From NCBI GenBank assembly GCA_964035545.1, contig OZ037773.1, positions 6,229,751 through 6,293,750 of the forward strand: a stretch of 64,000 nt of DNA, written 5' to 3'. Each line of letters starts with the position of its first letter. The stretch's first letter is position 1. The position numbers and the translations under genes were made by a program. The stretch is from Bugula neritina. Taxonomy: Eukaryota; Animalia; Bryozoa. The notes beneath the pieces are model-generated. The model was not told the DNA's origin. It saw nothing but the letters and a program-made list of their open reading frames with translations, and searched no databases. Below are positions 7,610 through 32,540 of the stretch, piece by piece.

Positions 7610-10600
7610 CTAATAACCTATTGTTGGAAAGACTTTGCTGTGAAGAAGGTCTTGGGATTGTGAGTTCTGATGTGCAATCGTCGGCTTACCACTGTCGTAC
7701 TCTGAGTCTGAACTTTCAGCAGATGGGGTTGAGCTGTCACTCCCTCCAGACTCACTGTGACAATTTCTGGTTCTCTCCGTCCGTCCTGCGGGTGAGAGAG
7801 AAATGGCATCCATTGATGACTCATCCAACAGATCAAAGCTCTCTGCTGTAGGTAAGTGACTCATACTGCCACCACAACTGGAGGAGATTTTCCTGCGCAG
7901 ACGTCCGTTGATTAACAATGAGTCAGCAGACTCTAGCCTTGAAAAGTCTAGAGATTTCCTTCTGTTGTGATGAACGTTCGTTTTTCTTCTTACTGCAGAC
8001 GCTTCATTGTTACTACCAGTGCCAGAGTACAAATCGGACATGGACAAGTTTGCGCGATACAGATGACTGTCTTTCAGTTTATTATGGCAGCCATGTTGTC
8101 CATGTTTTAAGTACCTTCTTTGTATAGGTAAAGTTTGGGTAGTAACCTGAAGTTGTTCCTTGCTGCTAGCTTCAAACAATTTATCAAAGTTTCTATTGAT
8201 GAAGTCACTGTAACAGGGTGAGTCACGAGGAGTGGGTGGAGTCTCTAAGGGAGCTTTCTCCTTTTTCTTCCACAGCGGAAGGCTGAGAACAAAGCCATTG
8301 ATTTTCTTTTTCAACTTTTTTCTCTACAAGTAAGATATGTTAATTATGCTATGATAGTGACATGCAAAGTGAAAATAATTGTGTTAAAATTAATTCTCGC
8401 TATATCAAAATTTTATGGCTTATCATGATTCATTTTTTGGTATGCATATGTGTGTGAAACTGTTCATCTCTAACAGCTGCAATTGAAAGCTTTGCCGAGA
8501 TTCGAATGCAAAATGCTTAGCATTTCAAAATGATGCAGCCATTATTAAATTGTATGCATAAAACCTTACCTTTGGCACCATCCCAAGTTCCGTGTAATAT
8601 CCGTCGGTCAACTTAGATTTTGAGCACAAGATTAGCTGCTTCAGCCCCACAATGCCTTGCTGTGAAAAAGCACTGGTGAAGATCTGGCCAATGCACTGAG
8701 ATTGAGTGACATCTATCAGCCGGTTTGGAGCAAAGTCATGCTCCTTCTTTAGTTTGTCGCACTTGTTGCCAATGACAACGATATCAGCATCAGCTGCAAG
8801 TGATATTAAGAAAACTATGAAAAACAGCTGTATATACTACAACCTAATACAGTGCTCCTTCTGTATCTCACTAAGCTAGGGGTCCCCCGAAACCTCAATT
8901 GGCGACATAGTAAAATACCAGACTTAGCTCTCAGATCTGTTAAATTTGGCCATTTTGTTCCTATGCACATATACATAAGCCACAGAATGGGAGTTTAAAC
9001 CATTCTCGTGACCTATGGAATTTCGTAAAAAAGAGAACCATGTGAACTATAGAAGAGTATTGTGAAATTACACAATACTATGATATGCGACACACCAATA
9101 GCTTATGAAGATTATGAATAATGTGTGTTACTCAACAACCACTATTCAAAGCAATCTCTTAATCCCGGATGATCTACAGTTAAGATGTGGCTTACCTTTA
9201 ATGTCCCGAACACCCTTTATTATGTTTTGTAGTGATTGCCGCCAATCAGGGGATGTGACATCATAAACCACGAGTACCAAGTGAGCTCTTTTCACAAACA
9301 GACTCTGCATGGCAGCGAATTCGTTCCAGGCAGCCGTGTCAATGATGTCTATTTGAAGGAACTGACCATCTACAGGAAGTAAGGATAAAACAATAGCATG
9401 ATGTAGCAAGAAGCAAATTATCACAAAACTCATCAAATAATACATTGTTGCGGTAATTAATCTAGATTATTTAATGTATTAGGAGGTATTCTACTACTTG
9501 AGGTAGTAGAGCACTAAATTCTTTACCTTTAGCAATAGTTACAAAAATGGGTCAACTGATTTTGATACTGTATCTTAAAAAACATGTGACTGAAGCTGAC
9601 ATGTGTTTGCTGGTGACATGTAAGTGCTAGCGGCATGTAACTGTTGGTGACATAAGACTGAAGGTGACATGGGACTGCATGTAACCTATGATGGCAGTGA
9701 CATGTGACTGTAAATGGCATGTGACTGTAGTTGACATGTGACTGTAGTTGACATGTGACTGTAGTTGACATGTGACTGCAGGTGCTTGAGCAGGTATTTG
9801 GAGCATAAATAAGCTATGTGGCAGAGATATGGTTTTAAGCAATTCGAAAGTAAAATACTGCTACAAAAACTTCTCAATTGTTATTTATTGAAATTCAAAT
9901 ATGAGATATTTTCAAACTTTCAAAAATCAAAATGCGTCAAGCATCTTAATTTTTTTGTAAATAGCGAGCAAATTTGAATAACTTTTGCATTCAAAAGAAG
10001 GTGAAACTTTAAACCTGAAACTATTGCAAAAAACCCTAAGCTAGGTATAGTATATCAATTGAGATTAGCCCAATTGTTCGGCGCCTCAGGTATGCATGCA
10101 TTACAGAATTATGGGACTCTTACAGGAGCCTCTGTAAATGCTAAATTATATCAGAAATAGCTGACATTTTGTTTTGCTACGATGCTTCATTAGCATGCAA
10201 ATGGCTGCCAGTCAAAGTTGTTTTATAATATTATAAATGTTTGTGTACTCAGGAGTTGCCCCTTCTCTTTACAAAACCACATAATCACAAGGCTTACCTG
10301 TGAAATTGTGATTAATTTACTAATATTCTACTTTTTGTATCAAAGAATATACTTTGTTTTTGGAATTTGGATTATAATTAAATAGTGTTGCTATTAGCTA
10401 TATGTTTAGTTTCTCTTCTTTGCTATAAAGTGTAAAACACAGAGCTAATTGATATTTACACTTACTGAAGATGTTATAGCTAGCTGTATATCAATCACAT
10501 AAAAGTATATAGACGAGGTTAGCTACGTCAACTAGTTCACCTGATTTGAGATAAGACAAAACATGTTTTCTTATCTTGTAGCCATCAGTATGTAAATCTT

Positions 10601-15764: not shown

Positions 15765-15825
15765 ATATAGTATATAAATACAGTATATATATATATACAG
15801 TATATATATACAGTATATATATACA

Positions 15826-15913
<88 letters not shown>

Positions 15914-16092
15914 TGTATATATATATACTGTATTTATATATATATACTGTATTTATATACAGTATATATATATAAATACAGTATATATATATATACAGTA
16001 TATATATATATACTGTATATATATACAGTATATATATATATACTGTATATAAATACAGTATATATATATATATACAGTATATATATATACTG

Positions 16093-16187
<95 letters not shown>

Positions 16188-16220
16188 TATATATACAGTA
16201 TATATACAGTATATAAATAT
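15765..16220. repeat. Complex (TA)n microsatellite interrupted by ACAGT/ACTGT units
   Basis: Long pure TA runs at about 15828-15912 and 16097-16184, with interspersed tacagta/tactgta units in both orientations. Confidence 0.95.
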
Positions 16221-17036
16221 GTATGTCCTTTTAGCTTAACCTATTAACAAATAAGTACTACTTACAGATGCTATGACTTCTCCCCCCTCGCCTCATGCAC
16301 AGTTTCACCCCCTTTATTCACTCCTTTCAATGAACTAGCTGCCAGGCAAATTGTAGTTATGAGTGAAAGCCCACAGAATTTGCTTGTCAAGTACACCAAG
16401 CAATAGTTAGAAAAATGGAGGTACACGTAAATGCAGTAGTAGAGAAATTGAGAAAAGCCTGGTGTTTTAGATTGGAAATGTAGCAAAAGAGTGGATATGT
16501 TTTCGAAAAAGTTTGAACCAAAATTCTCTAAGAAAGTTTAAGAACTTAGACTGTTGAAGTTTCTCCACTACTGCACATAAATGAAAAATAGTGTAAACTT
16601 TTGCATTATGGTTTATATAATTTTATTTTGGGATTTAAAAACAATTAATTAAATAGGCTTTATATTTTCTAAGATGTAATTAGATTATTATTTCACAAGA
16701 TGGTACTGCATTTAAAAAGTTTGAAGAGCATAGCGCTTTGATGAGAAAGATAAAACAGTTCTAAAACAGCTCTTGGAAGTTAAAAGCATTCTGATTATAA
16801 ACTTTTTGCATTACATCTGTTTAAGCTACTGTTCTTTATAGAAACTTTTGAATATATTGAAAATTGCTCACAGAGGTGCCAACTTTCACCTAACTCTTGG
16901 CTAGTTTGAAGTAACCAGTGTGCATTAACTCAAAACCCGGATGCCGGAAGCTCTAACTGAAGCTAATTATGTGAAACCAGGCAATGTAAAAATAGCATTA
17001 CCTTAGATACCACCTTTGTTACATTGCGTAACCATC

Positions 17037-17595
17037 TGTCACAAAACTGTTGGTAGCAGTGTGACGAGTTCGAAAAGTCTGGTAGTCAGAAGTATATAGA
17101 CAAGTAGCATACAGCTTGCTAATCCAGTTGTGAGTAAATAGAGTTGTGAATAAGTAGACTTTATTTCTCTAGTAAGATATGCACAGATGAATTTATAAAA
17201 ATGAACTCCAAGAATGAACTTATAAAAAGGAACTGCGAGAATAAACTGAACTGTAAACACAACTGCCTCAGTATTTATAGTAAACAAAAAGCTCTAGAAT
17301 ATTCTCAAGCATTCCAGTACAGAAGATTCTAGTAGAAAACATTCCCCACATGCCAATACTATTTATAGAAAATCAAAACAAAACAAAACATTGGAATTTC
17401 CATGGTTATTTCGCAATTATTGCGCAATACCTTGTTTACATTGCTGGGCAGTAGTTAACATGACTAACCAAAATAGTAACAATGAACAATGACCCATCTC
17501 TTTGATTAGTCTAGAATATTTATGAACATTCCTGTATAATCATTAGGAAAAACCTGGTAGGTCTATAGATATATGTACACTCAGAATTTGTGACA
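17037..17595 (-). repeat. LTR (3'-most LTR of the array), 559 bp
   Basis: TG..CA ends with 9-bp inverted repeat TGTCACAAA/TTTGTGACA. Minus-strand TATAAATA at 17360-17367 and 17272-17279, AATAAA at 17160-17165. Confidence 0.96.
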
Positions 17596-17596
17596 A

Positions 17597-17607
17597 CCCC
17601 CCATTCT
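17597..17607 (-). promoter_or_regulatory. Polypurine tract (also at +3876, +7752, +11628)
   Basis: Minus strand AGAATGGGGGG lies one base before the LTR start TGTCACA. Confidence 0.8.
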
Positions 17608-17641
17608 AAGAGAAATTATCTTGATCATTTCTCCTAACTAC

Positions 17642-17765
17642 TTAAAATTCTGAGTCAATTCGGCTTAGATAATCAGCTCCAACATTGTCCTTTCCTTTGA
17701 TTGACTCCACCTTTATTCTGAAGTTCTGTAAATACATAGCCCATCTCATCACTCTGCTGTTTCTT
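17642..17765 (-). pseudogene. Out-of-frame remnant of the RNase H C-terminus (repeated in each unit, ending at 21518, 25394, 29270)
   Basis: RNSRVMRWAMYLQNFRIKVESIKGKDNVGADYLSR matches the Ty3/Gypsy RNase H end consensus R..RW...LQ.F.F.I.Y..GK.N..AD.LSR. It lies in a different frame from the long ORF. Confidence 0.88.
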
Positions 17766-20700
17766 ACTGTACAGATCCAACAAATCATTTTGGCATTCTT
17801 CTCTTTCCTTATCGTGATCAATAATTCCAGCACCAGCAGCATCTAGAGTCATCACAGCTCCAACAGTCATAGAGTCGGTAGGTGTCTCCCGCTCAAAATA
17901 TTTCTTCAGCATGTTGGCATGGTATGTTCTCCTCTTCCCTCTGATGTTGATAATGTAGTCATTCAGTCTGACTTTCTCCTCAATATTGAATGGTCCTTGC
18001 CAATGCATCAGCAATTTATTTCCATCCGTAGGTAGAAGAATGAGCACTTTGTCACCAGGTTTGAAGTCTCTCTGCTTAGCTTTCTTATCAAAATAGTGTT
18101 TGTATCTTTTTTGACTGTCTTTTAGCGAAGCTAGTGCCATCTCCATCATGTCATCTAAACGCTCTCTCAATTCAAAAACATGTTGATAGCAGGTCTTGAC
18201 TTCATCGGCAGTGTCTTCTTTTGTCCAAAGTTGTCGCAGGATGTACATTGGTCCACGCACAGTTCTTCCATAGAGTAACTCGAATGGGGCGAAGCCTGTT
18301 GATTCCTGTGGGACTTCTCTATATGCAAATAGAGCTGCATTGATGAACCGATGCCACTGTCTTGGTTCTTTAGCACACAACTTTTTTAACATACTCTTGA
18401 GGGTTCCGTTGAACTTTTCCACAAGTCCATTGGCCATTGCATGGTATGGTGAGGTAGGAAGTTGTCGCATGTCAAGTAATCTGGTAAACTCTTTCATGTA
18501 GTCCGAGATGAATTGAGTTCCTTGGTCGCTTATCACCTCCTCTGGTATCCCAACACGACTGTATATGTCAAGCAGCGCTTCAGCTACAGTAGCTGAGTCA
18601 ATGTTCTTCAATGGTGTAGCTTCAGGATATCTTGTAGCATAGTCAACTAAAGTTAGGATGTAGCGGTGTCCTTTCTCACTTGGAGGGTTAATTGGTCCGA
18701 TTAGGTCTATTGCACATCTCTTGAATGGGGTGTCAATTAGTGGAGTTTCCTGTACTGGAACTTTCATGACTGAGCCTTTTTTCACCGTCTTCTGGCAAAT
18801 GTCACATGACTGACAGAAACGTACGACATCTCCGTTTAGTCCTGGCCAGAAGAAGTTGGAAAGCACTCTATCAGTGGTTTTCTTTACTCCTAGGTGTCCG
18901 CTCATTATGCAGTCATGAGCTTTCTGTAGAACTTCCTTCCTCAGTGAACTGGGTACCATGAGTTGTTTAACAGGTTTTACACTGACAGGCTTCGAGTCGG
19001 TGTACTCACGGTACAGAATCTTGTTCCTCACCACAAACCTAGTGGTGCATCCCTTTTTCTCCTTCACTTCTTTTGCATCGAAGAAACGTTCCAATGTGGG
19101 GTCATCCCTCTGCAGTCTGGCTATTTCATCTTTCCCTATACTTAATGGGTTAGTATTTGAATCAATCTTCAGTGGTTTGTCTCCTGACTTTTCCTTGACA
19201 GCCTGAGCTCTTGTGGTTACGGCGCAGTCCTTCCAGTTTTCCAGCGGCTGGTCAGCTGATCTCGCTCCATCCACATTCCCAATAAGCAGGTCACAAATCG
19301 TCTTGTCCATTACTGCAGCTTTGACGACTCCATTGTAAAATGGTGAGCGCACTGAGATAAGTGCCCACTGAGCCTCCTTAACACTTGCATCAGCCATCTT
19401 CAGATAAACTGATTCTCCAGTTAAGTGTTGAGGTTGCACATACTTTGCATTGACTACAATGCAACCACAGCCGGTGTCGCGCATTACAGTAGCTCGTTGG
19501 CCATTAACTTCCGCATCAAATATCGCTGTGCCCCCATCTTTGAATTTAGGTCCATTCTTGCAGACAGCAGCGTTGATAAACTTTTTACCATTAACTGTGA
19601 TTTCCGTAGGTTCTTCCACTTTAGATGAGATTCCTGGATCTGTGACCACAGTCTTATTCTGAGTAGTCGCTATTGCAGCAGCAGCATGCACTAACCTCCC
19701 ACCATACTTTCTGCAGTCTGAAGTATTGTGGTTGTTCATCTTGCAATGTGAACAGTGCTTCTTCCCTTGCCGTGGGCAGTTACGAGCAATGTGCGACTTA
19801 TCTTTGCAGATGAAGCATGCACCATCGCTTTTACTTCCTTGTTCAGCATCCATGCTATCGGCAGGCGCGTTTTCCATCCTTTTTGTATTAGTTTTCTTTG
19901 TCTTTGCTAGTTTCCTTCCACGAGCGTGCAAGAACAGTGACGCTGCATCACACATATCCTCACTGCTGTTGTAGGAACTTTGCTTTAAATGCACAGCTAG
20001 GTCGTCTGGGCATGATGATATAAATTGTTCAGTCGCCACTAGTTTGGCTATGTCCATGCCCCCTGAAAGTTCTACCCACTTGTGCACATAAGTTTCTATC
20101 CTAGTGAATAGTTGGGCAGGAGTTTCATCCTCGTAAGCTTCTGCCTCTCTGAGCTTTTTTTTGTAGCCCTCTTGAGTCAAGTTAAAGCGCTCCAACAAGG
20201 CTTCTTTGACTTTTTTATAATCTCTACGGTCGGTAGGTGATAACCGGATGTAAGCTTCTGTTGCTGTACCCCTTAGGTACTGACTGAGATGGTAGGGCCA
20301 ATCTCCCTTGTCCCAGTTACATCCTTCGGCAACCCACTCGAACCGCTCTAAATAGCTATCCATTTCGTCCACCTTCTCATCAAAGAATGGTATTTTTGGT
20401 TTTGGTTTGTTAGCTATTTCTAACCTGGTGCTCTCATGTCTTGAGTGCTCCAAACTTGTGTCAGCTTTCAGCTTTTCCATATCTAATTCATGTCGTTGTC
20501 TTCTCTCTTCTGCCTCCTGGTCAGCTTTAACCTTGAGTGCCATTGCCTCCTGATCAGCTTTAACCTTGAATGCCATTGCCTCCTGATCAGCTTTTATCTT
20601 CATCTCCATTAAGGCTTTCTCATTTTCTTGCCTGATCCTTTCCGCCTCACGCTCTAATCTCCGCTCCTCTCGGTCCTTTTCTTTTTCCTCTCGGTCCTTT

Positions 20701-20816
20701 TCTTTTTCTTCTTGTGCAGCAACAATGGGTAGGTTCTTTTCAACAAAAGCTACGAGCTTGTCATCCACCAGTCCAAGATCTTTACCCATCTGTGTCACTC
20801 TCTCCAACAACGCCAT
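17673..20816 (-). CDS. Gag-protease-integrase polyprotein lacking RT, copy 1
   Basis: N-terminal coiled coil; Gag core (YLERFE..A...W); two CCHC knuckles (CFICKDKSHIARNC, CSHCKMNNHNTSDC); aspartic protease RDTGC and DLLIGN; integrase HHCC (HDCIMSGH...CDIC), DDE (IDLIGP, ISDQG, VEKFN) and GPF motif. No YxDD RT motif. Confidence 0.95.
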   Translation of the reverse strand: MALLERVTQMGKDLGLVDDKLVAFVEKNLPIVAAQEEKEKDREEKEKDREERRLEREAERIRQENEKALMEMKIKADQEAMAFKVKADQEAMALKVKADQEAEERRQRHELDMEKLKADTSLEHSRHESTRLEIANKPKPKIPFFDEKVDEMDSYLERFEWVAEGCNWDKGDWPYHLSQYLRGTATEAYIRLSPTDRRDYKKVKEALLERFNLTQEGYKKKLREAEAYEDETPAQLFTRIETYVHKWVELSGGMDIAKLVATEQFISSCPDDLAVHLKQSSYNSSEDMCDAASLFLHARGRKLAKTKKTNTKRMENAPADSMDAEQGSKSDGACFICKDKSHIARNCPRQGKKHCSHCKMNNHNTSDCRKYGGRLVHAAAAIATTQNKTVVTDPGISSKVEEPTEITVNGKKFINAAVCKNGPKFKDGGTAIFDAEVNGQRATVMRDTGCGCIVVNAKYVQPQHLTGESVYLKMADASVKEAQWALISVRSPFYNGVVKAAVMDKTICDLLIGNVDGARSADQPLENWKDCAVTTRAQAVKEKSGDKPLKIDSNTNPLSIGKDEIARLQRDDPTLERFFDAKEVKEKKGCTTRFVVRNKILYREYTDSKPVSVKPVKQLMVPSSLRKEVLQKAHDCIMSGHLGVKKTTDRVLSNFFWPGLNGDVVRFCQSCDICQKTVKKGSVMKVPVQETPLIDTPFKRCAIDLIGPINPPSEKGHRYILTLVDYATRYPEATPLKNIDSATVAEALLDIYSRVGIPEEVISDQGTQFISDYMKEFTRLLDMRQLPTSPYHAMANGLVEKFNGTLKSMLKKLCAKEPRQWHRFINAALFAYREVPQESTGFAPFELLYGRTVRGPMYILRQLWTKEDTADEVKTCYQHVFELRERLDDMMEMALASLKDSQKRYKHYFDKKAKQRDFKPGDKVLILLPTDGNKLLMHWQGPFNIEEKVRLNDYIINIRGKRRTYHANMLKKYFERETPTDSMTVGAVMTLDAAGAGIIDHDKEREECQNDLLDLYSKKQQSDEMGYVFTELQNKGGVNQRKGQCWS

Positions 20817-20892
20817 AATGTCTCAACAACCGTTAATTAATCCTGTGTATACTCACGTTGTAACTAATAACTTCCCTGTGTGCGACTGAGAC

Positions 20893-20910
20893 TTCCCGGA
20901 GCAGCCCCCA
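20893..20910 (-). promoter_or_regulatory. Primer-binding site, tRNA-Pro type (also 24769-24786, 28645-28662, 32521-32538)
   Basis: TGGGGGCTGCTCCGGGAA, 2 nt after the LTR end; 15/18 match to the canonical tRNA-Pro PBS TGGGGGCTCGTCCGGGAT. Confidence 0.85.
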
Positions 20911-20912
20911 AT

Positions 20913-21471
20913 TGTCACAAAACTGTTGGTAGCAGTGTGACGAGTTCGAAAAGTCTGGTAGTCAGAAGTATATAGACAAGTAGCATACAGCTTGCTAATC
21001 CAGTTGTGAGTAAATAGAGTTGTGAATAAGTAGACTTTATTTCTCTAGTAAGATATGCACAGATGAATTTATAAAAATGAACTCCAAGAATGAACTTATA
21101 AAAAGGAACTGCGAGAATAAACTGAACTGTAAACACAACTGCCTCAGTATTTATAGTAAACAAAAAGCTCTAGAATATTCTCAAGCATTCCAGTACAGAA
21201 GATTCTAGTAGAAAACATTCCCCACATGCCAATACTATTTATAGAAAATCAAAACAAAACAAAACATTGGAATTTCCATGGTTATTTCGCAATTATTGCG
21301 CAATACCTTGTTTACATTGCTGGGCAGTAGTTAACATGACTAACCAAAATAGTAACAATGAACAATGACCCATCTCTTTGATTAGTCTAGAATATTTATG
21401 AACATTCCTGTATAATCATTAGGAAAAACCTGGTAGGTCTATAGATATATGTACACTCAGAATTTGTGACA
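20913..21471 (-). repeat. Shared internal LTR 2
   Basis: Same sequence as 17037-17595, with a PBS on one side and a PPT on the other. Confidence 0.96.
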
Positions 21472-21548
21472 ACCCCCCATTCTAAGAGAAATTATCTTGA
21501 TCATTTCTCCTAACTACTTAAAATTCTGAGTCAATTCGGCTTAGATAA

Positions 21549-24500
21549 TCAGCTCCAACATTGTCCTTTCCTTTGATTGACTCCACCTTTATTCTGAAGT
21601 TCTGTAAATACATAGCCCATCTCATCACTCTGCTGTTTCTTACTGTACAGATCCAACAAATCATTTTGGCATTCTTCTCTTTCCTTATCGTGATCAATAA
21701 TTCCAGCACCAGCAGCATCTAGAGTCATCACAGCTCCAACAGTCATAGAGTCGGTAGGTGTCTCCCGCTCAAAATATTTCTTCAGCATGTTGGCATGGTA
21801 TGTTCTCCTCTTCCCTCTGATGTTGATAATGTAGTCATTCAGTCTGACTTTCTCCTCAATATTGAATGGTCCTTGCCAATGCATCAGCAATTTATTTCCA
21901 TCCGTAGGTAGAAGAATGAGCACTTTGTCACCAGGTTTGAAGTCTCTCTGCTTAGCTTTCTTATCAAAATAGTGTTTGTATCTTTTTTGACTGTCTTTTA
22001 GCGAAGCTAGTGCCATCTCCATCATGTCATCTAAACGCTCTCTCAATTCAAAAACATGTTGATAGCAGGTCTTGACTTCATCGGCAGTGTCTTCTTTTGT
22101 CCAAAGTTGTCGCAGGATGTACATTGGTCCACGCACAGTTCTTCCATAGAGTAACTCGAATGGGGCGAAGCCTGTTGATTCCTGTGGGACTTCTCTATAT
22201 GCAAATAGAGCTGCATTGATGAACCGATGCCACTGTCTTGGTTCTTTAGCACACAACTTTTTTAACATACTCTTGAGGGTTCCGTTGAACTTTTCCACAA
22301 GTCCATTGGCCATTGCATGGTATGGTGAGGTAGGAAGTTGTCGCATGTCAAGTAATCTGGTAAACTCTTTCATGTAGTCCGAGATGAATTGAGTTCCTTG
22401 GTCGCTTATCACCTCCTCTGGTATCCCAACACGACTGTATATGTCAAGCAGCGCTTCAGCTACAGTAGCTGAGTCAATGTTCTTCAATGGTGTAGCTTCA
22501 GGATATCTTGTAGCATAGTCAACTAAAGTTAGGATGTAGCGGTGTCCTTTCTCACTTGGAGGGTTAATTGGTCCGATTAGGTCTATTGCACATCTCTTGA
22601 ATGGGGTGTCAATTAGTGGAGTTTCCTGTACTGGAACTTTCATGACTGAGCCTTTTTTCACCGTCTTCTGGCAAATGTCACATGACTGACAGAAACGTAC
22701 GACATCTCCGTTTAGTCCTGGCCAGAAGAAGTTGGAAAGCACTCTATCAGTGGTTTTCTTTACTCCTAGGTGTCCGCTCATTATGCAGTCATGAGCTTTC
22801 TGTAGAACTTCCTTCCTCAGTGAACTGGGTACCATGAGTTGTTTAACAGGTTTTACACTGACAGGCTTCGAGTCGGTGTACTCACGGTACAGAATCTTGT
22901 TCCTCACCACAAACCTAGTGGTGCATCCCTTTTTCTCCTTCACTTCTTTTGCATCGAAGAAACGTTCCAATGTGGGGTCATCCCTCTGCAGTCTGGCTAT
23001 TTCATCTTTCCCTATACTTAATGGGTTAGTATTTGAATCAATCTTCAGTGGTTTGTCTCCTGACTTTTCCTTGACAGCCTGAGCTCTTGTGGTTACGGCG
23101 CAGTCCTTCCAGTTTTCCAGCGGCTGGTCAGCTGATCTCGCTCCATCCACATTCCCAATAAGCAGGTCACAAATCGTCTTGTCCATTACTGCAGCTTTGA
23201 CGACTCCATTGTAAAATGGTGAGCGCACTGAGATAAGTGCCCACTGAGCCTCCTTAACACTTGCATCAGCCATCTTCAGATAAACTGATTCTCCAGTTAA
23301 GTGTTGAGGTTGCACATACTTTGCATTGACTACAATGCAACCACAGCCGGTGTCGCGCATTACAGTAGCTCGTTGGCCATTAACTTCCGCATCAAATATC
23401 GCTGTGCCCCCATCTTTGAATTTAGGTCCATTCTTGCAGACAGCAGCGTTGATAAACTTTTTACCATTAACTGTGATTTCCGTAGGTTCTTCCACTTTAG
23501 ATGAGATTCCTGGATCTGTGACCACAGTCTTATTCTGAGTAGTCGCTATTGCAGCAGCAGCATGCACTAACCTCCCACCATACTTTCTGCAGTCTGAAGT
23601 ATTGTGGTTGTTCATCTTGCAATGTGAACAGTGCTTCTTCCCTTGCCGTGGGCAGTTACGAGCAATGTGCGACTTATCTTTGCAGATGAAGCATGCACCA
23701 TCGCTTTTACTTCCTTGTTCAGCATCCATGCTATCGGCAGGCGCGTTTTCCATCCTTTTTGTATTAGTTTTCTTTGTCTTTGCTAGTTTCCTTCCACGAG
23801 CGTGCAAGAACAGTGACGCTGCATCACACATATCCTCACTGCTGTTGTAGGAACTTTGCTTTAAATGCACAGCTAGGTCGTCTGGGCATGATGATATAAA
23901 TTGTTCAGTCGCCACTAGTTTGGCTATGTCCATGCCCCCTGAAAGTTCTACCCACTTGTGCACATAAGTTTCTATCCTAGTGAATAGTTGGGCAGGAGTT
24001 TCATCCTCGTAAGCTTCTGCCTCTCTGAGCTTTTTTTTGTAGCCCTCTTGAGTCAAGTTAAAGCGCTCCAACAAGGCTTCTTTGACTTTTTTATAATCTC
24101 TACGGTCGGTAGGTGATAACCGGATGTAAGCTTCTGTTGCTGTACCCCTTAGGTACTGACTGAGATGGTAGGGCCAATCTCCCTTGTCCCAGTTACATCC
24201 TTCGGCAACCCACTCGAACCGCTCTAAATAGCTATCCATTTCGTCCACCTTCTCATCAAAGAATGGTATTTTTGGTTTTGGTTTGTTAGCTATTTCTAAC
24301 CTGGTGCTCTCATGTCTTGAGTGCTCCAAACTTGTGTCAGCTTTCAGCTTTTCCATATCTAATTCATGTCGTTGTCTTCTCTCTTCTGCCTCCTGGTCAG
24401 CTTTAACCTTGAGTGCCATTGCCTCCTGATCAGCTTTAACCTTGAATGCCATTGCCTCCTGATCAGCTTTTATCTTCATCTCCATTAAGGCTTTCTCATT

Positions 24501-24692
24501 TTCTTGCCTGATCCTTTCCGCCTCACGCTCTAATCTCCGCTCCTCTCGGTCCTTTTCTTTTTCCTCTCGGTCCTTTTCTTTTTCTTCTTGTGCAGCAACA
24601 ATGGGTAGGTTCTTTTCAACAAAAGCTACGAGCTTGTCATCCACCAGTCCAAGATCTTTACCCATCTGTGTCACTCTCTCCAACAACGCCAT
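21549..24692 (-). CDS. Gag-protease-integrase polyprotein lacking RT, copy 2
   Basis: Translation identical to copy 1. Confidence 0.95.
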   Translation of the reverse strand: MALLERVTQMGKDLGLVDDKLVAFVEKNLPIVAAQEEKEKDREEKEKDREERRLEREAERIRQENEKALMEMKIKADQEAMAFKVKADQEAMALKVKADQEAEERRQRHELDMEKLKADTSLEHSRHESTRLEIANKPKPKIPFFDEKVDEMDSYLERFEWVAEGCNWDKGDWPYHLSQYLRGTATEAYIRLSPTDRRDYKKVKEALLERFNLTQEGYKKKLREAEAYEDETPAQLFTRIETYVHKWVELSGGMDIAKLVATEQFISSCPDDLAVHLKQSSYNSSEDMCDAASLFLHARGRKLAKTKKTNTKRMENAPADSMDAEQGSKSDGACFICKDKSHIARNCPRQGKKHCSHCKMNNHNTSDCRKYGGRLVHAAAAIATTQNKTVVTDPGISSKVEEPTEITVNGKKFINAAVCKNGPKFKDGGTAIFDAEVNGQRATVMRDTGCGCIVVNAKYVQPQHLTGESVYLKMADASVKEAQWALISVRSPFYNGVVKAAVMDKTICDLLIGNVDGARSADQPLENWKDCAVTTRAQAVKEKSGDKPLKIDSNTNPLSIGKDEIARLQRDDPTLERFFDAKEVKEKKGCTTRFVVRNKILYREYTDSKPVSVKPVKQLMVPSSLRKEVLQKAHDCIMSGHLGVKKTTDRVLSNFFWPGLNGDVVRFCQSCDICQKTVKKGSVMKVPVQETPLIDTPFKRCAIDLIGPINPPSEKGHRYILTLVDYATRYPEATPLKNIDSATVAEALLDIYSRVGIPEEVISDQGTQFISDYMKEFTRLLDMRQLPTSPYHAMANGLVEKFNGTLKSMLKKLCAKEPRQWHRFINAALFAYREVPQESTGFAPFELLYGRTVRGPMYILRQLWTKEDTADEVKTCYQHVFELRERLDDMMEMALASLKDSQKRYKHYFDKKAKQRDFKPGDKVLILLPTDGNKLLMHWQGPFNIEEKVRLNDYIINIRGKRRTYHANMLKKYFERETPTDSMTVGAVMTLDAAGAGIIDHDKEREECQNDLLDLYSKKQQSDEMGYVFTELQNKGGVNQRKGQCWS

Positions 24693-24788
24693 AATGTCTC
24701 AACAACCGTTAATTAATCCTGTGTATACTCACGTTGTAACTAATAACTTCCCTGTGTGCGACTGAGACTTCCCGGAGCAGCCCCCAAT

Positions 24789-25347
24789 TGTCACAAAACT
24801 GTTGGTAGCAGTGTGACGAGTTCGAAAAGTCTGGTAGTCAGAAGTATATAGACAAGTAGCATACAGCTTGCTAATCCAGTTGTGAGTAAATAGAGTTGTG
24901 AATAAGTAGACTTTATTTCTCTAGTAAGATATGCACAGATGAATTTATAAAAATGAACTCCAAGAATGAACTTATAAAAAGGAACTGCGAGAATAAACTG
25001 AACTGTAAACACAACTGCCTCAGTATTTATAGTAAACAAAAAGCTCTAGAATATTCTCAAGCATTCCAGTACAGAAGATTCTAGTAGAAAACATTCCCCA
25101 CATGCCAATACTATTTATAGAAAATCAAAACAAAACAAAACATTGGAATTTCCATGGTTATTTCGCAATTATTGCGCAATACCTTGTTTACATTGCTGGG
25201 CAGTAGTTAACATGACTAACCAAAATAGTAACAATGAACAATGACCCATCTCTTTGATTAGTCTAGAATATTTATGAACATTCCTGTATAATCATTAGGA
25301 AAAACCTGGTAGGTCTATAGATATATGTACACTCAGAATTTGTGACA
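24789..25347 (-). repeat. Shared internal LTR 3
   Basis: Same sequence as LTR 1 at offset 2x3876. Confidence 0.96.
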
Positions 25348-25424
25348 ACCCCCCATTCTAAGAGAAATTATCTTGATCATTTCTCCTAACTACTTAAAAT
25401 TCTGAGTCAATTCGGCTTAGATAA

Positions 25425-28400
25425 TCAGCTCCAACATTGTCCTTTCCTTTGATTGACTCCACCTTTATTCTGAAGTTCTGTAAATACATAGCCCATCTCA
25501 TCACTCTGCTGTTTCTTACTGTACAGATCCAACAAATCATTTTGGCATTCTTCTCTTTCCTTATCGTGATCAATAATTCCAGCACCAGCAGCATCTAGAG
25601 TCATCACAGCTCCAACAGTCATAGAGTCGGTAGGTGTCTCCCGCTCAAAATATTTCTTCAGCATGTTGGCATGGTATGTTCTCCTCTTCCCTCTGATGTT
25701 GATAATGTAGTCATTCAGTCTGACTTTCTCCTCAATATTGAATGGTCCTTGCCAATGCATCAGCAATTTATTTCCATCCGTAGGTAGAAGAATGAGCACT
25801 TTGTCACCAGGTTTGAAGTCTCTCTGCTTAGCTTTCTTATCAAAATAGTGTTTGTATCTTTTTTGACTGTCTTTTAGCGAAGCTAGTGCCATCTCCATCA
25901 TGTCATCTAAACGCTCTCTCAATTCAAAAACATGTTGATAGCAGGTCTTGACTTCATCGGCAGTGTCTTCTTTTGTCCAAAGTTGTCGCAGGATGTACAT
26001 TGGTCCACGCACAGTTCTTCCATAGAGTAACTCGAATGGGGCGAAGCCTGTTGATTCCTGTGGGACTTCTCTATATGCAAATAGAGCTGCATTGATGAAC
26101 CGATGCCACTGTCTTGGTTCTTTAGCACACAACTTTTTTAACATACTCTTGAGGGTTCCGTTGAACTTTTCCACAAGTCCATTGGCCATTGCATGGTATG
26201 GTGAGGTAGGAAGTTGTCGCATGTCAAGTAATCTGGTAAACTCTTTCATGTAGTCCGAGATGAATTGAGTTCCTTGGTCGCTTATCACCTCCTCTGGTAT
26301 CCCAACACGACTGTATATGTCAAGCAGCGCTTCAGCTACAGTAGCTGAGTCAATGTTCTTCAATGGTGTAGCTTCAGGATATCTTGTAGCATAGTCAACT
26401 AAAGTTAGGATGTAGCGGTGTCCTTTCTCACTTGGAGGGTTAATTGGTCCGATTAGGTCTATTGCACATCTCTTGAATGGGGTGTCAATTAGTGGAGTTT
26501 CCTGTACTGGAACTTTCATGACTGAGCCTTTTTTCACCGTCTTCTGGCAAATGTCACATGACTGACAGAAACGTACGACATCTCCGTTTAGTCCTGGCCA
26601 GAAGAAGTTGGAAAGCACTCTATCAGTGGTTTTCTTTACTCCTAGGTGTCCGCTCATTATGCAGTCATGAGCTTTCTGTAGAACTTCCTTCCTCAGTGAA
26701 CTGGGTACCATGAGTTGTTTAACAGGTTTTACACTGACAGGCTTCGAGTCGGTGTACTCACGGTACAGAATCTTGTTCCTCACCACAAACCTAGTGGTGC
26801 ATCCCTTTTTCTCCTTCACTTCTTTTGCATCGAAGAAACGTTCCAATGTGGGGTCATCCCTCTGCAGTCTGGCTATTTCATCTTTCCCTATACTTAATGG
26901 GTTAGTATTTGAATCAATCTTCAGTGGTTTGTCTCCTGACTTTTCCTTGACAGCCTGAGCTCTTGTGGTTACGGCGCAGTCCTTCCAGTTTTCCAGCGGC
27001 TGGTCAGCTGATCTCGCTCCATCCACATTCCCAATAAGCAGGTCACAAATCGTCTTGTCCATTACTGCAGCTTTGACGACTCCATTGTAAAATGGTGAGC
27101 GCACTGAGATAAGTGCCCACTGAGCCTCCTTAACACTTGCATCAGCCATCTTCAGATAAACTGATTCTCCAGTTAAGTGTTGAGGTTGCACATACTTTGC
27201 ATTGACTACAATGCAACCACAGCCGGTGTCGCGCATTACAGTAGCTCGTTGGCCATTAACTTCCGCATCAAATATCGCTGTGCCCCCATCTTTGAATTTA
27301 GGTCCATTCTTGCAGACAGCAGCGTTGATAAACTTTTTACCATTAACTGTGATTTCCGTAGGTTCTTCCACTTTAGATGAGATTCCTGGATCTGTGACCA
27401 CAGTCTTATTCTGAGTAGTCGCTATTGCAGCAGCAGCATGCACTAACCTCCCACCATACTTTCTGCAGTCTGAAGTATTGTGGTTGTTCATCTTGCAATG
27501 TGAACAGTGCTTCTTCCCTTGCCGTGGGCAGTTACGAGCAATGTGCGACTTATCTTTGCAGATGAAGCATGCACCATCGCTTTTACTTCCTTGTTCAGCA
27601 TCCATGCTATCGGCAGGCGCGTTTTCCATCCTTTTTGTATTAGTTTTCTTTGTCTTTGCTAGTTTCCTTCCACGAGCGTGCAAGAACAGTGACGCTGCAT
27701 CACACATATCCTCACTGCTGTTGTAGGAACTTTGCTTTAAATGCACAGCTAGGTCGTCTGGGCATGATGATATAAATTGTTCAGTCGCCACTAGTTTGGC
27801 TATGTCCATGCCCCCTGAAAGTTCTACCCACTTGTGCACATAAGTTTCTATCCTAGTGAATAGTTGGGCAGGAGTTTCATCCTCGTAAGCTTCTGCCTCT
27901 CTGAGCTTTTTTTTGTAGCCCTCTTGAGTCAAGTTAAAGCGCTCCAACAAGGCTTCTTTGACTTTTTTATAATCTCTACGGTCGGTAGGTGATAACCGGA
28001 TGTAAGCTTCTGTTGCTGTACCCCTTAGGTACTGACTGAGATGGTAGGGCCAATCTCCCTTGTCCCAGTTACATCCTTCGGCAACCCACTCGAACCGCTC
28101 TAAATAGCTATCCATTTCGTCCACCTTCTCATCAAAGAATGGTATTTTTGGTTTTGGTTTGTTAGCTATTTCTAACCTGGTGCTCTCATGTCTTGAGTGC
28201 TCCAAACTTGTGTCAGCTTTCAGCTTTTCCATATCTAATTCATGTCGTTGTCTTCTCTCTTCTGCCTCCTGGTCAGCTTTAACCTTGAGTGCCATTGCCT
28301 CCTGATCAGCTTTAACCTTGAATGCCATTGCCTCCTGATCAGCTTTTATCTTCATCTCCATTAAGGCTTTCTCATTTTCTTGCCTGATCCTTTCCGCCTC

Positions 28401-28568
28401 ACGCTCTAATCTCCGCTCCTCTCGGTCCTTTTCTTTTTCCTCTCGGTCCTTTTCTTTTTCTTCTTGTGCAGCAACAATGGGTAGGTTCTTTTCAACAAAA
28501 GCTACGAGCTTGTCATCCACCAGTCCAAGATCTTTACCCATCTGTGTCACTCTCTCCAACAACGCCAT
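25425..28568 (-). CDS. Gag-protease-integrase polyprotein lacking RT, copy 3
   Basis: Translation identical to copy 1. Confidence 0.95.
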   Translation of the reverse strand: MALLERVTQMGKDLGLVDDKLVAFVEKNLPIVAAQEEKEKDREEKEKDREERRLEREAERIRQENEKALMEMKIKADQEAMAFKVKADQEAMALKVKADQEAEERRQRHELDMEKLKADTSLEHSRHESTRLEIANKPKPKIPFFDEKVDEMDSYLERFEWVAEGCNWDKGDWPYHLSQYLRGTATEAYIRLSPTDRRDYKKVKEALLERFNLTQEGYKKKLREAEAYEDETPAQLFTRIETYVHKWVELSGGMDIAKLVATEQFISSCPDDLAVHLKQSSYNSSEDMCDAASLFLHARGRKLAKTKKTNTKRMENAPADSMDAEQGSKSDGACFICKDKSHIARNCPRQGKKHCSHCKMNNHNTSDCRKYGGRLVHAAAAIATTQNKTVVTDPGISSKVEEPTEITVNGKKFINAAVCKNGPKFKDGGTAIFDAEVNGQRATVMRDTGCGCIVVNAKYVQPQHLTGESVYLKMADASVKEAQWALISVRSPFYNGVVKAAVMDKTICDLLIGNVDGARSADQPLENWKDCAVTTRAQAVKEKSGDKPLKIDSNTNPLSIGKDEIARLQRDDPTLERFFDAKEVKEKKGCTTRFVVRNKILYREYTDSKPVSVKPVKQLMVPSSLRKEVLQKAHDCIMSGHLGVKKTTDRVLSNFFWPGLNGDVVRFCQSCDICQKTVKKGSVMKVPVQETPLIDTPFKRCAIDLIGPINPPSEKGHRYILTLVDYATRYPEATPLKNIDSATVAEALLDIYSRVGIPEEVISDQGTQFISDYMKEFTRLLDMRQLPTSPYHAMANGLVEKFNGTLKSMLKKLCAKEPRQWHRFINAALFAYREVPQESTGFAPFELLYGRTVRGPMYILRQLWTKEDTADEVKTCYQHVFELRERLDDMMEMALASLKDSQKRYKHYFDKKAKQRDFKPGDKVLILLPTDGNKLLMHWQGPFNIEEKVRLNDYIINIRGKRRTYHANMLKKYFERETPTDSMTVGAVMTLDAAGAGIIDHDKEREECQNDLLDLYSKKQQSDEMGYVFTELQNKGGVNQRKGQCWS

Positions 28569-28664
28569 AATGTCTCAACAACCGTTAATTAATCCTGTGT
28601 ATACTCACGTTGTAACTAATAACTTCCCTGTGTGCGACTGAGACTTCCCGGAGCAGCCCCCAAT

Positions 28665-29223
28665 TGTCACAAAACTGTTGGTAGCAGTGTGACGAGTTCG
28701 AAAAGTCTGGTAGTCAGAAGTATATAGACAAGTAGCATACAGCTTGCTAATCCAGTTGTGAGTAAATAGAGTTGTGAATAAGTAGACTTTATTTCTCTAG
28801 TAAGATATGCACAGATGAATTTATAAAAATGAACTCCAAGAATGAACTTATAAAAAGGAACTGCGAGAATAAACTGAACTGTAAACACAACTGCCTCAGT
28901 ATTTATAGTAAACAAAAAGCTCTAGAATATTCTCAAGCATTCCAGTACAGAAGATTCTAGTAGAAAACATTCCCCACATGCCAATACTATTTATAGAAAA
29001 TCAAAACAAAACAAAACATTGGAATTTCCATGGTTATTTCGCAATTATTGCGCAATACCTTGTTTACATTGCTGGGCAGTAGTTAACATGACTAACCAAA
29101 ATAGTAACAATGAACAATGACCCATCTCTTTGATTAGTCTAGAATATTTATGAACATTCCTGTATAATCATTAGGAAAAACCTGGTAGGTCTATAGATAT
29201 ATGTACACTCAGAATTTGTGACA
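28665..29223 (-). repeat. Shared internal LTR 4
   Basis: Same sequence as LTR 1 at offset 3x3876. Confidence 0.96.
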
Positions 29224-29300
29224 ACCCCCCATTCTAAGAGAAATTATCTTGATCATTTCTCCTAACTACTTAAAATTCTGAGTCAATTCGGCTTAGATAA

Positions 29301-32300
29301 TCAGCTCCAACATTGTCCTTTCCTTTGATTGACTCCACCTTTATTCTGAAGTTCTGTAAATACATAGCCCATCTCATCACTCTGCTGTTTCTTACTGTAC
29401 AGATCCAACAAATCATTTTGGCATTCTTCTCTTTCCTTATCGTGATCAATAATTCCAGCACCAGCAGCATCTAGAGTCATCACAGCTCCAACAGTCATAG
29501 AGTCGGTAGGTGTCTCCCGCTCAAAATATTTCTTCAGCATGTTGGCATGGTATGTTCTCCTCTTCCCTCTGATGTTGATAATGTAGTCATTCAGTCTGAC
29601 TTTCTCCTCAATATTGAATGGTCCTTGCCAATGCATCAGCAATTTATTTCCATCCGTAGGTAGAAGAATGAGCACTTTGTCACCAGGTTTGAAGTCTCTC
29701 TGCTTAGCTTTCTTATCAAAATAGTGTTTGTATCTTTTTTGACTGTCTTTTAGCGAAGCTAGTGCCATCTCCATCATGTCATCTAAACGCTCTCTCAATT
29801 CAAAAACATGTTGATAGCAGGTCTTGACTTCATCGGCAGTGTCTTCTTTTGTCCAAAGTTGTCGCAGGATGTACATTGGTCCACGCACAGTTCTTCCATA
29901 GAGTAACTCGAATGGGGCGAAGCCTGTTGATTCCTGTGGGACTTCTCTATATGCAAATAGAGCTGCATTGATGAACCGATGCCACTGTCTTGGTTCTTTA
30001 GCACACAACTTTTTTAACATACTCTTGAGGGTTCCGTTGAACTTTTCCACAAGTCCATTGGCCATTGCATGGTATGGTGAGGTAGGAAGTTGTCGCATGT
30101 CAAGTAATCTGGTAAACTCTTTCATGTAGTCCGAGATGAATTGAGTTCCTTGGTCGCTTATCACCTCCTCTGGTATCCCAACACGACTGTATATGTCAAG
30201 CAGCGCTTCAGCTACAGTAGCTGAGTCAATGTTCTTCAATGGTGTAGCTTCAGGATATCTTGTAGCATAGTCAACTAAAGTTAGGATGTAGCGGTGTCCT
30301 TTCTCACTTGGAGGGTTAATTGGTCCGATTAGGTCTATTGCACATCTCTTGAATGGGGTGTCAATTAGTGGAGTTTCCTGTACTGGAACTTTCATGACTG
30401 AGCCTTTTTTCACCGTCTTCTGGCAAATGTCACATGACTGACAGAAACGTACGACATCTCCGTTTAGTCCTGGCCAGAAGAAGTTGGAAAGCACTCTATC
30501 AGTGGTTTTCTTTACTCCTAGGTGTCCGCTCATTATGCAGTCATGAGCTTTCTGTAGAACTTCCTTCCTCAGTGAACTGGGTACCATGAGTTGTTTAACA
30601 GGTTTTACACTGACAGGCTTCGAGTCGGTGTACTCACGGTACAGAATCTTGTTCCTCACCACAAACCTAGTGGTGCATCCCTTTTTCTCCTTCACTTCTT
30701 TTGCATCGAAGAAACGTTCCAATGTGGGGTCATCCCTCTGCAGTCTGGCTATTTCATCTTTCCCTATACTTAATGGGTTAGTATTTGAATCAATCTTCAG
30801 TGGTTTGTCTCCTGACTTTTCCTTGACAGCCTGAGCTCTTGTGGTTACGGCGCAGTCCTTCCAGTTTTCCAGCGGCTGGTCAGCTGATCTCGCTCCATCC
30901 ACATTCCCAATAAGCAGGTCACAAATCGTCTTGTCCATTACTGCAGCTTTGACGACTCCATTGTAAAATGGTGAGCGCACTGAGATAAGTGCCCACTGAG
31001 CCTCCTTAACACTTGCATCAGCCATCTTCAGATAAACTGATTCTCCAGTTAAGTGTTGAGGTTGCACATACTTTGCATTGACTACAATGCAACCACAGCC
31101 GGTGTCGCGCATTACAGTAGCTCGTTGGCCATTAACTTCCGCATCAAATATCGCTGTGCCCCCATCTTTGAATTTAGGTCCATTCTTGCAGACAGCAGCG
31201 TTGATAAACTTTTTACCATTAACTGTGATTTCCGTAGGTTCTTCCACTTTAGATGAGATTCCTGGATCTGTGACCACAGTCTTATTCTGAGTAGTCGCTA
31301 TTGCAGCAGCAGCATGCACTAACCTCCCACCATACTTTCTGCAGTCTGAAGTATTGTGGTTGTTCATCTTGCAATGTGAACAGTGCTTCTTCCCTTGCCG
31401 TGGGCAGTTACGAGCAATGTGCGACTTATCTTTGCAGATGAAGCATGCACCATCGCTTTTACTTCCTTGTTCAGCATCCATGCTATCGGCAGGCGCGTTT
31501 TCCATCCTTTTTGTATTAGTTTTCTTTGTCTTTGCTAGTTTCCTTCCACGAGCGTGCAAGAACAGTGACGCTGCATCACACATATCCTCACTGCTGTTGT
31601 AGGAACTTTGCTTTAAATGCACAGCTAGGTCGTCTGGGCATGATGATATAAATTGTTCAGTCGCCACTAGTTTGGCTATGTCCATGCCCCCTGAAAGTTC
31701 TACCCACTTGTGCACATAAGTTTCTATCCTAGTGAATAGTTGGGCAGGAGTTTCATCCTCGTAAGCTTCTGCCTCTCTGAGCTTTTTTTTGTAGCCCTCT
31801 TGAGTCAAGTTAAAGCGCTCCAACAAGGCTTCTTTGACTTTTTTATAATCTCTACGGTCGGTAGGTGATAACCGGATGTAAGCTTCTGTTGCTGTACCCC
31901 TTAGGTACTGACTGAGATGGTAGGGCCAATCTCCCTTGTCCCAGTTACATCCTTCGGCAACCCACTCGAACCGCTCTAAATAGCTATCCATTTCGTCCAC
32001 CTTCTCATCAAAGAATGGTATTTTTGGTTTTGGTTTGTTAGCTATTTCTAACCTGGTGCTCTCATGTCTTGAGTGCTCCAAACTTGTGTCAGCTTTCAGC
32101 TTTTCCATATCTAATTCATGTCGTTGTCTTCTCTCTTCTGCCTCCTGGTCAGCTTTAACCTTGAGTGCCATTGCCTCCTGATCAGCTTTAACCTTGAATG
32201 CCATTGCCTCCTGATCAGCTTTTATCTTCATCTCCATTAAGGCTTTCTCATTTTCTTGCCTGATCCTTTCCGCCTCACGCTCTAATCTCCGCTCCTCTCG

Positions 32301-32444
32301 GTCCTTTTCTTTTTCCTCTCGGTCCTTTTCTTTTTCTTCTTGTGCAGCAACAATGGGTAGGTTCTTTTCAACAAAAGCTACGAGCTTGTCATCCACCAGT
32401 CCAAGATCTTTACCCATCTGTGTCACTCTCTCCAACAACGCCAT
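29301..32444 (-). CDS. Gag-protease-integrase polyprotein lacking RT, copy 4
   Basis: Translation identical to copy 1. Confidence 0.95.
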   Translation of the reverse strand: MALLERVTQMGKDLGLVDDKLVAFVEKNLPIVAAQEEKEKDREEKEKDREERRLEREAERIRQENEKALMEMKIKADQEAMAFKVKADQEAMALKVKADQEAEERRQRHELDMEKLKADTSLEHSRHESTRLEIANKPKPKIPFFDEKVDEMDSYLERFEWVAEGCNWDKGDWPYHLSQYLRGTATEAYIRLSPTDRRDYKKVKEALLERFNLTQEGYKKKLREAEAYEDETPAQLFTRIETYVHKWVELSGGMDIAKLVATEQFISSCPDDLAVHLKQSSYNSSEDMCDAASLFLHARGRKLAKTKKTNTKRMENAPADSMDAEQGSKSDGACFICKDKSHIARNCPRQGKKHCSHCKMNNHNTSDCRKYGGRLVHAAAAIATTQNKTVVTDPGISSKVEEPTEITVNGKKFINAAVCKNGPKFKDGGTAIFDAEVNGQRATVMRDTGCGCIVVNAKYVQPQHLTGESVYLKMADASVKEAQWALISVRSPFYNGVVKAAVMDKTICDLLIGNVDGARSADQPLENWKDCAVTTRAQAVKEKSGDKPLKIDSNTNPLSIGKDEIARLQRDDPTLERFFDAKEVKEKKGCTTRFVVRNKILYREYTDSKPVSVKPVKQLMVPSSLRKEVLQKAHDCIMSGHLGVKKTTDRVLSNFFWPGLNGDVVRFCQSCDICQKTVKKGSVMKVPVQETPLIDTPFKRCAIDLIGPINPPSEKGHRYILTLVDYATRYPEATPLKNIDSATVAEALLDIYSRVGIPEEVISDQGTQFISDYMKEFTRLLDMRQLPTSPYHAMANGLVEKFNGTLKSMLKKLCAKEPRQWHRFINAALFAYREVPQESTGFAPFELLYGRTVRGPMYILRQLWTKEDTADEVKTCYQHVFELRERLDDMMEMALASLKDSQKRYKHYFDKKAKQRDFKPGDKVLILLPTDGNKLLMHWQGPFNIEEKVRLNDYIINIRGKRRTYHANMLKKYFERETPTDSMTVGAVMTLDAAGAGIIDHDKEREECQNDLLDLYSKKQQSDEMGYVFTELQNKGGVNQRKGQCWS

Positions 32445-32540
32445 AATGTCTCAACAACCGTTAATTAATCCTGTGTATACTCACGTTGTAACTAATAACT
32501 TCCCTGTGTGCGACTGAGACTTCCCGGAGCAGCCCCCAAT

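Follow-up and report, generated by a model that had tools for sequence, protein, structure and literature searches.

Can a long terminal repeat (LTR) retrotransposon that has lost its reverse transcriptase (RT) together with its RNase H, and has kept Gag, protease (PR) and integrase (IN), still be copied with enzymes borrowed from a full-length relative, or is such a locus no more than a defective insertion? The question is raised by a 64,000-nucleotide stretch of the genome of the bryozoan Bugula neritina (GCA_964035545.1, contig OZ037773.1, positions 6,229,751 to 6,293,750 of the forward strand), the whole of which we call the window. It holds, on the minus strand, four identical tandem units of an LTR element whose open reading frame (ORF) runs from Gag through integrase. 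By sequence comparison, we show that the element is an LTR retrotransposon of the Gmr1-like Ty3/gypsy type, very young and carrying an internal deletion.

The RT-less unit and its full-length relatives

Each unit is built around one uninterrupted ORF of 1047 aa, which repeats at +3876, +7752 and +11628 from its first copy and makes up nearly all of the internal region, with just 77 bp remaining after it. The features of the unit, all on the minus strand, are as follows.

17673-20816, minus: Gag-PR-IN ORF of unit 1, 1047 aa (ORF list, Pfam, motifs)
21549-24692, 25425-28568 and 29301-32444, minus: identical 1047-aa ORFs of units 2-4 (sequence identity)
19713-20171, minus: Gag region, SCAN-like domain and knuckles together (Pfam and motif reading)
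19920-20171, minus: SCAN-like domain at the C terminus of the Gag capsid (Pfam SCAN, 22.5 bits, below cut-off)
19776-19817 and 19713-19754, minus: two CCHC zinc knuckles (motifs read directly)
19278-19517, minus: retropepsin-like protease (weak Pfam gag-asp_proteas match, E 0.023, with DTG and LLIG)
19470-19478, minus: DTG motif of the protease (read directly)
17898-18956, minus: integrase, with H2C2 zinc domain, DD35E core and GPF/SH3 C-terminal domain (Pfam and motifs)
17596-17606, minus: polypurine tract (PPT) GAATGGGGGGT, directly 5' of the 3' LTR (read directly)
20893-20910, minus: primer-binding site (PBS) TGGGGGCTGCTCCGGGAA, 2 nt past the 5' LTR (read directly)

Direct reading of the translated ORF placed two C-x2-C-x4-H-x4-C knuckles at aa 334-347 and aa 355-368, the DTG at aa 447, the integrase zinc motif (H-x6-H...C-x2-C) at aa 634-674, the catalytic residues at D704, D764 and E800 (D-x35-E) and the GPF at aa 941. 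In Pfam, Integrase_H2C2 (3e-20) and rve (9e-12) both scored above their cut-offs, and matches to SCAN-like Gag (22.5 bits, cut-off 27), retropepsin and SH3_Tf2-1 were found below theirs. No RVT or RNase H family was found by Pfam in the 1047-aa ORF, and tblastn with an 80%-identical full-length relative as the query recovered no RT anywhere in the 64-kb window. By both searches, then, an enzyme essential for replication is missing from the unit, which makes it non-autonomous. The sequence-only reading of this locus had described just such an open frame, with two CCHC knuckles, a DTG protease and an HHCC-DDE-GPF integrase and with RT motifs lacking, and the motif reading, the Pfam hidden Markov model scan and tblastn bear it out on each of these points.

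It had also taken all cis signals to be kept, and they are indeed present: direct LTRs with TG..CA ends (TGTCAC..GTGACA), PBS, PPT and a target-site duplication (TSD). Within the LTR lie TATA-like motifs, and an AATAAA is found at its position 431. The PBS, TGGGGGCTGCTCCGGGAA, resembles the tRNA-Pro PBS of murine leukaemia virus. The element has 41% G+C compared to 32% for its flanks in a window that is AT-rich.

A protein search identified P0001 and P0002 (1466-1489 aa, 77-80% identity) as the closest full-length relatives of the ORF, and relatives occur in molluscs, a bryozoan, a coral, a hemichordate and Ciona. The order of their Pfam domains is SCAN-Gag, H2C2, rve, RVT_1 and RT_RNaseH, that is, Gag-PR-IN-RT-RNaseH; in P0001, P0002, P0005 and P0009, rve lies at ~aa 640-790 and RVT_1 at ~aa 1030-1270, with RNase H after it. 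Over P0001 aa 1-995 the window ORF aligns collinearly, and the pol tail in the window lies downstream of the integrase. The full-length relatives thus confirm the IN-before-RT order that had been assumed for this element from its letters. An integrase upstream of RT is the hallmark that separates Gmr1 elements from other gypsy elements (PMC8220671), and the relatives show this Gmr1-like pol order (PR-IN-RT-RH). Membership of Ty3/gypsy is indicated by the H2C2, DD35E and GPF features of the integrase and by relatives that carry RVT_1 and RT_RNaseH and no RVT_2, while the Gmr1-like placement rests on the type of integrase and the domain order of the relatives, the window element itself being without RT.

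Two other readings of the domain order were rejected. A copia element does not agree with an H2C2/rve integrase of the gypsy type and with relatives bearing RVT_1 rather than RVT_2, and a deletion between protease and integrase, as the canonical gypsy order would require, does not agree with relatives that have IN before RT and are collinear with the ORF through aa 1-995.

A SCAN-related domain at the C terminus of the Gag capsid would be expected of the Gmr1-like clade, a link made through Gmr30; a literature search of incomplete coverage did not find a paper linking Gmr30 with SCAN. Against the Pfam cut-off of 27 bits for SCAN-like Gag, P0001 scores 33.1 and P0005 35.7, compared to 22.5 for the window ORF. 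In the N-terminal coiled region of Gag, we observed in-frame tandem expansions at 20511-20594 and 20665-20712 (2.5 copies of a 33-nt unit and 2.3 copies of a 21-nt unit, respectively), which coincide exactly with gaps of 22 aa and 7 aa in P0001.

The deletion and the tandem array

In DNA alignments, the unit follows two full-length relatives, L001 and L003, up to a junction and picks up again 1307 bp further on in both, which leaves 1307 bp of RT and RNase H missing. The following features, all on the minus strand, define the junction and what lies beyond it.

17753-17762, minus: deletion junction on the 10-nt microhomology AAACAGCAGA, where the left and right parental alignments meet
17676-17747, minus: 24-aa out-of-frame tail of the ORF, encoded past the junction
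17645-17761, minus: remnant of the pol C terminus, the last 39 codons after RNase H, off the ORF frame (tblastn)

The parental sites are AAACAACAGA on the left and GAACAGCAGA on the right. As 1307 does not divide evenly by three, the ORF enters a new tail of 24 aa and then stops. The sequence-only reading had put the junction near 17760-17775, within ~10 nt of where it lies, and had seen about 40 codons of the RNase H C terminus surviving in another frame before the PPT; there are 39, the last of pol. The most likely origin of the deletion would be a template switch by reverse transcriptase at the microhomology.

The remnant dates the event. Its protein is 100% identical to P0001 aa 1427-1465, with the stop at 17642-17644, and its 11 nucleotide differences from L001 are all synonymous in the old pol frame (dN, the nonsynonymous divergence, is 0; dS, the synonymous divergence, is 0.84), compared to a dS of ~1.1 and a dN/dS of 0.08 for the remainder of the ORF. 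As only synonymous differences accumulated, the remnant was coding as part of pol for nearly all of the divergence, and the deletion is recent on that scale. The dN/dS of ~0.08, found against both L001 and L003 at a dS of ~1, is the mark of a long autonomous history and cannot speak to selection after the deletion.

The deleted unit is present four times in a structure with the following components.

17037-33099, minus: entire tandem array, 5 LTRs with 4 internal regions (100% self-identity at period 3876)
17037-17595, minus: 3' LTR of unit 1, 559 bp, TGTCAC..GTGACA (blastn)
20913-21471, 24789-25347, 28665-29223 and 32541-33099, minus: further identical LTRs (blastn, 100%)
17032-17036, no strand: TSD CCATC, left copy (element 3' side), abutting the outer LTR
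33100-33104, no strand: TSD CCATC, right copy (element 5' side), abutting the outer LTR

Five identical LTRs of 559 bp, which were the copies recovered from the window by blastn at 100% identity, alternate with four identical internal regions of 3317 bp in the layout LTR-I-LTR-I-LTR-I-LTR-I-LTR, with the inner LTRs shared. Self-comparison of 17037-33099 gave a period of exactly 3876 bp and 0 mismatches over 16,063 bp, a length equal to 4 x 3876 + 559. The period is the sum of the internal region and one LTR, the exact size of a one-LTR circle. The 5-bp CCATC abuts both outermost LTRs and is found at the two outer ends of the array only, with none between units. One TSD around five LTRs and four identical units implies one integration, later amplified locally; the four units are a single insertion amplified in place and not four transpositions, and the identity of the five LTRs makes both insertion and amplification very recent. 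The deletion is older than the local amplification, as the sequence-only reading had concluded from a junction common to all four units. For annotation of the window, the message is that there is one insertion rather than four, and that the element is not autonomous.

The element integrated once, generating the CCATC duplication, and its later growth to four internal units is most simply explained by unequal recombination between its 5' and 3' LTRs or by one-LTR circles that inserted through homology. Tandem LTR structures that have kept their TSD are common and derive from single insertions (PMC11899658, PMC13570524).

A perfect repeat of this length also raises the concern that the four-unit array, or its copy number, was produced by the assembly from a genome that holds one unit, either because one LTR-internal-LTR element was over-expanded or because reads came from circular or rolling-circle DNA. 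We consider this unlikely. No variant tells the units apart over 16 kb at 100% identity, and the contig of the relative L003, a circularly permuted element, shows how an assembler may treat such repeats; against this, the outer LTR boundaries are clean, the 5-bp TSD matches, and tandem LTR structures from single insertions are common in long-read assemblies (PMC11899658). An artefact would touch the array only, not the deletion. The L003 contig (L003:1-6058) itself runs from the pol 3' end through an LTR and gag..pol to the start of an LTR, which could be a collapsed-LTR assembly or another tandem.

The long open ORF might instead belong to a host gene cluster domesticated from a retrotransposon, with Gag-PR-IN co-opted, and vertebrates offer examples of such co-option for both SCAN-like Gag and gypsy integrase domains. 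We regard this as extremely unlikely: the LTRs, PBS, PPT and TSD are intact, the LTRs are identical, an out-of-frame pol remnant survives, and there is no orthologue above 81% identity in the protein collection searched, which together argue for a fresh insertion and not an old conserved gene.

RT-deleted relatives and mobilisation in trans

The relatives offer precedents for the spread of an element of this form. Several of the shorter ones have genuinely lost RT, as opposed to having an ORF interrupted by a stop codon. In the Littorina saxatilis assembly GCA_037325665.1, an RT-deleted subfamily occupies at least three chromosomes: P0036, P0043 and P0044, encoded on three of them, are contiguous intronless ORFs with one common junction peptide. 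LTRs were compared in the two copies that were fetched, P0036 and P0043, and in a full-length element, with the following coordinates.

L012:1980-7451: RT-deleted copy encoding P0036
L013:1578-7146: RT-deleted copy encoding P0043
L015:1947-8276: full-length partner

The LTR pairs of L012 and L013 are 100% and 99.1% identical, respectively, and the copies are ~98% identical to each other. The full-length L015 has an ORF of 1524 aa, LTRs that are 100% identical, the TSD GACTG and the same PBS and PPT as the deleted copies, to which it is 95-97% identical apart from a 720-bp in-frame gap. Despite its identical LTRs, L012 has a mismatched TSD (GAAAG versus CCTTC), which suggests recombination between copies.

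A second set comes from ENA ERZ25072293, where L009, L010 and L011 lie on different contigs, are 97.5-98% identical from LTR to LTR and have unrelated flanks. They have two deletions in common, which remove most of RT and part of RNase H, and their ORFs are open (1018-1080 aa) with no RVT_1 match. The full-length partner in the same assembly, L014, matches them at 92% identity from the 5' LTR to the end of Gag-PR-IN. At the protein level, the tail of these deleted copies (RT C terminus and RNase H) shows ~70% identity to L014, compared to 95% for Gag-PR-IN. Both a deleted structure at several loci and an autonomous partner with the LTR, PBS and PPT in common are found for Littorina and for ERZ25072293. 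A further RT-less element, L004 (P0018, 1019 aa), has LTRs 99.7% identical, the TSD AATTT and a tRNA-Pro-like PBS, with an in-frame loss of ~460-480 pol residues (parental aa ~1010/1027 to 1488). P0067, also considered as an RT-less relative, was rejected, as its RT lies in the next ORF and the element is normal. Several other short relatives simply stop past the integrase.

In P0001 coordinates, the starts of six independent deletions fall at aa 977-1015, just past the integrase, and their ends at aa 1210-1452, with the overlap of two alignments moving the Littorina end by ~19 residues. This clustering of starts may partly reflect ascertainment, as the query favoured proteins that retain the integrase.

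Since related elements have repeatedly produced Gag-PR-IN forms that lost RT and are accompanied by helpers, we judge the chances about even that the deleted form in the window is, or belongs to, a lineage actually mobilised in trans. The interpretation given in the sequence-only reading, a semi-autonomous or interfering element that would borrow RT, is partly supported: its structural claims are correct, and the relatives provide precedent for the functional one. The deleted form retains coding sequence for Gag, protease and a complete integrase, together with its LTRs, PBS and PPT. From the way in which LTR elements replicate, its RNA cannot be reverse-transcribed by its own products, and copying would occur only in particles that also hold the RT and RNase H of a full-length relative. 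The deleted polyprotein would co-assemble with that of the helper, and the deleted RNA would be packaged through Gag. The helper RT would then copy this RNA from the PBS that the two have in common, and the cDNA would be inserted by the element's own integrase or by that of the helper.

The six deletions, starting within ~40 residues of each other, point to a broader reading, which we put forward tentatively and at somewhat less than even odds: the IN-before-RT layout of Gmr1-like elements may repeatedly give rise to a distinct class of semi-autonomous parasites, with an open Gag-PR-IN frame, that in different animal phyla spread by using RT from full-length partners; the window element would be a freshly born member. 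In this proposal, and with the same tentative standing, one deletion within the IN-RT linker or immediately past it would have removed RT.

Several observations weigh against trans-mobilisation of the window element. The junction is absent from metagenome_contigs (searched with a 35-mer) and viral_contigs (27-mer), collections that evidently do not include the host genome. The exact 1047-aa protein is absent from a collection of 15 billion proteins by both exact and cluster look-up, and no protein in the collection exceeds 81% identity. Neither a second locus with the junction nor a full-length partner with the same LTR was found in the collections searched. The nearest relatives, L001 and L003, have diverged LTR bodies that barely align. 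The deletion is recent and bears no sign of a long independent history, and the integrity of the ORF is silent on selection, the LTRs being identical and having left no time for decay. Finally, the precedent comes from other organisms and was found with a query that favoured IN-retaining proteins.

Other searches gave a similar picture. A protein-guided search for metagenome loci yielded no close copy, its results being a Gag fragment at 69% identity and two distant matches, and the 64-kb window contains no full-length partner. L001 and L003 carry the exact 18-nt PBS of the window element (L001:33-50; L003:1202-1219), and the last 8 nt of the LTR and the 2-nt spacer are also identical. With a dS of ~1 and LTR bodies that barely align, they are distant cousins and not the parent.

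These points lend weight to a quite different history, in which the element is a one-off copy, dead on arrival and never mobilised, its deletion having arisen in the founding reverse transcription or by slippage after integration and only local recombination having multiplied it. This is a real contender, to which we give a little less than an even chance. The LTRs are identical and the RNase H remnant has not decayed, its differences being synonymous without exception, which shows that the deletion is very recent. Reverse transcription routinely generates deletions at microhomologies, a single insertion with one TSD accounts for all four units, and no other copy was found in the collections searched. 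That last absence, however, is uninformative, since those collections evidently lack the host genome, and in related families the forms without RT have reached several loci, which argues in the other direction.

The RT-less polyprotein could also poison the particles of a full-length relative, making the element an interfering or copy-number-control element instead of, or besides, being mobilised. Its assembly and enzymatic domains are intact, and four promoter-bearing tandem units might give a high dose, yet nothing in the sequence separates interference from plain parasitism, and we consider this quite unlikely, below the prospect of an assembly artefact.

Surroundings and comparison with known systems

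The array sits between host genes, of which the following were recognised in the window flanks, all on the minus strand.

7610-9771, minus: Ras-family exon, then a 234-aa serine-rich ORF
36337-36660, minus: F-box exon
51957-52038, minus: tRNA-Ser(GCT)
55750-56055, minus: UAA-transporter-like exon

An (AT) microsatellite of ~220 copies (15765-16224) lies 0.8 kb off the array. Two tandem arrays with units of 17 nt are found at 53207-53655 (26 copies) and 55546-55750 (12 copies), adjoining the UAA-transporter-like exon. An ORF over the second of these gave an Antistasin-like Pfam match (E 1.1e-07, 32.7 bits, cut-off 21.2) in which no single stretch passes alone and which may be driven by the repeat. 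Twin minus-strand ORFs at 41004-41291 and 41692-41979 gave identical weak DUF1091 matches, which indicates a local duplication of ~688 bp (40735-41979).

Among known systems, the element resembles the Gmr1-like clade in having an integrase of the gypsy type (H2C2, rve, GPF/SH3), a candidate SCAN-like domain in Gag, one gag-pol frame, LTR, PBS, PPT and a 5-bp TSD, with closest relatives that have IN upstream of RT. It differs from that clade in that the window copy is without RT and retains only a 39-codon pol tail, so that it has no placement in an RT phylogeny and is not autonomous. No paper on RT-less or non-autonomous Gmr1-like derivatives was found in a literature search of incomplete coverage. 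The array is like the tandem LTR-retrotransposon structures already described, in which inner LTRs are shared and one TSD marks a single insertion (PMC11899658, PMC13570524). Those were described mainly in plants, whereas here the element is of a metazoan type and every unit is RT-deleted.

As a non-autonomous, partly coding LTR element, it is of a kind already known, and a single locus is ordinary defective-element biology; the part worth following is the recurrence of Gag-PR-IN forms with helpers in the Gmr1-like clade. Non-autonomous LTR elements are usually described as losing everything (TRIM, LARD) or all but Gag (TR-GAG). The plant TR-GAG, LARD and TRIM elements resemble the window element in keeping LTR, PBS and PPT with an incomplete coding capacity, and TR-GAG elements have been termed semi-autonomous for keeping Gag (PMC13570524). 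In these plant elements, however, the integrase is lost too or only decayed pol fragments remain, whereas in the window element the protease and a complete integrase are open and the host is not a plant. An element that retains protease and integrase while missing nothing but RT and RNase H reveals which functions can be outsourced. If such forms do spread, they would offer a natural test of whether integrase and Gag prefer the RNA that encodes them and of whether RT is freely shared inside particles. With a full-length element and a dispersed RT-deleted subfamily in a chromosome-level assembly, Littorina saxatilis makes the idea testable by computation alone.

The closest working analogue is the mouse IAP 1-delta-1 class, which likewise combines an internal deletion, an open frame for part of the machinery and retained cis signals (PMC6466679). 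These partly deleted proviruses are trans-complemented by the proteins of full-length copies and are highly active (PMC6466679). The IAP deletion removes part of gag and pol and gives a gag-pol fusion, whereas in the window element, whose mobility is putative, RT and RNase H are cleanly removed on the 3' side of an intact integrase, a loss that only a layout with IN before RT allows.

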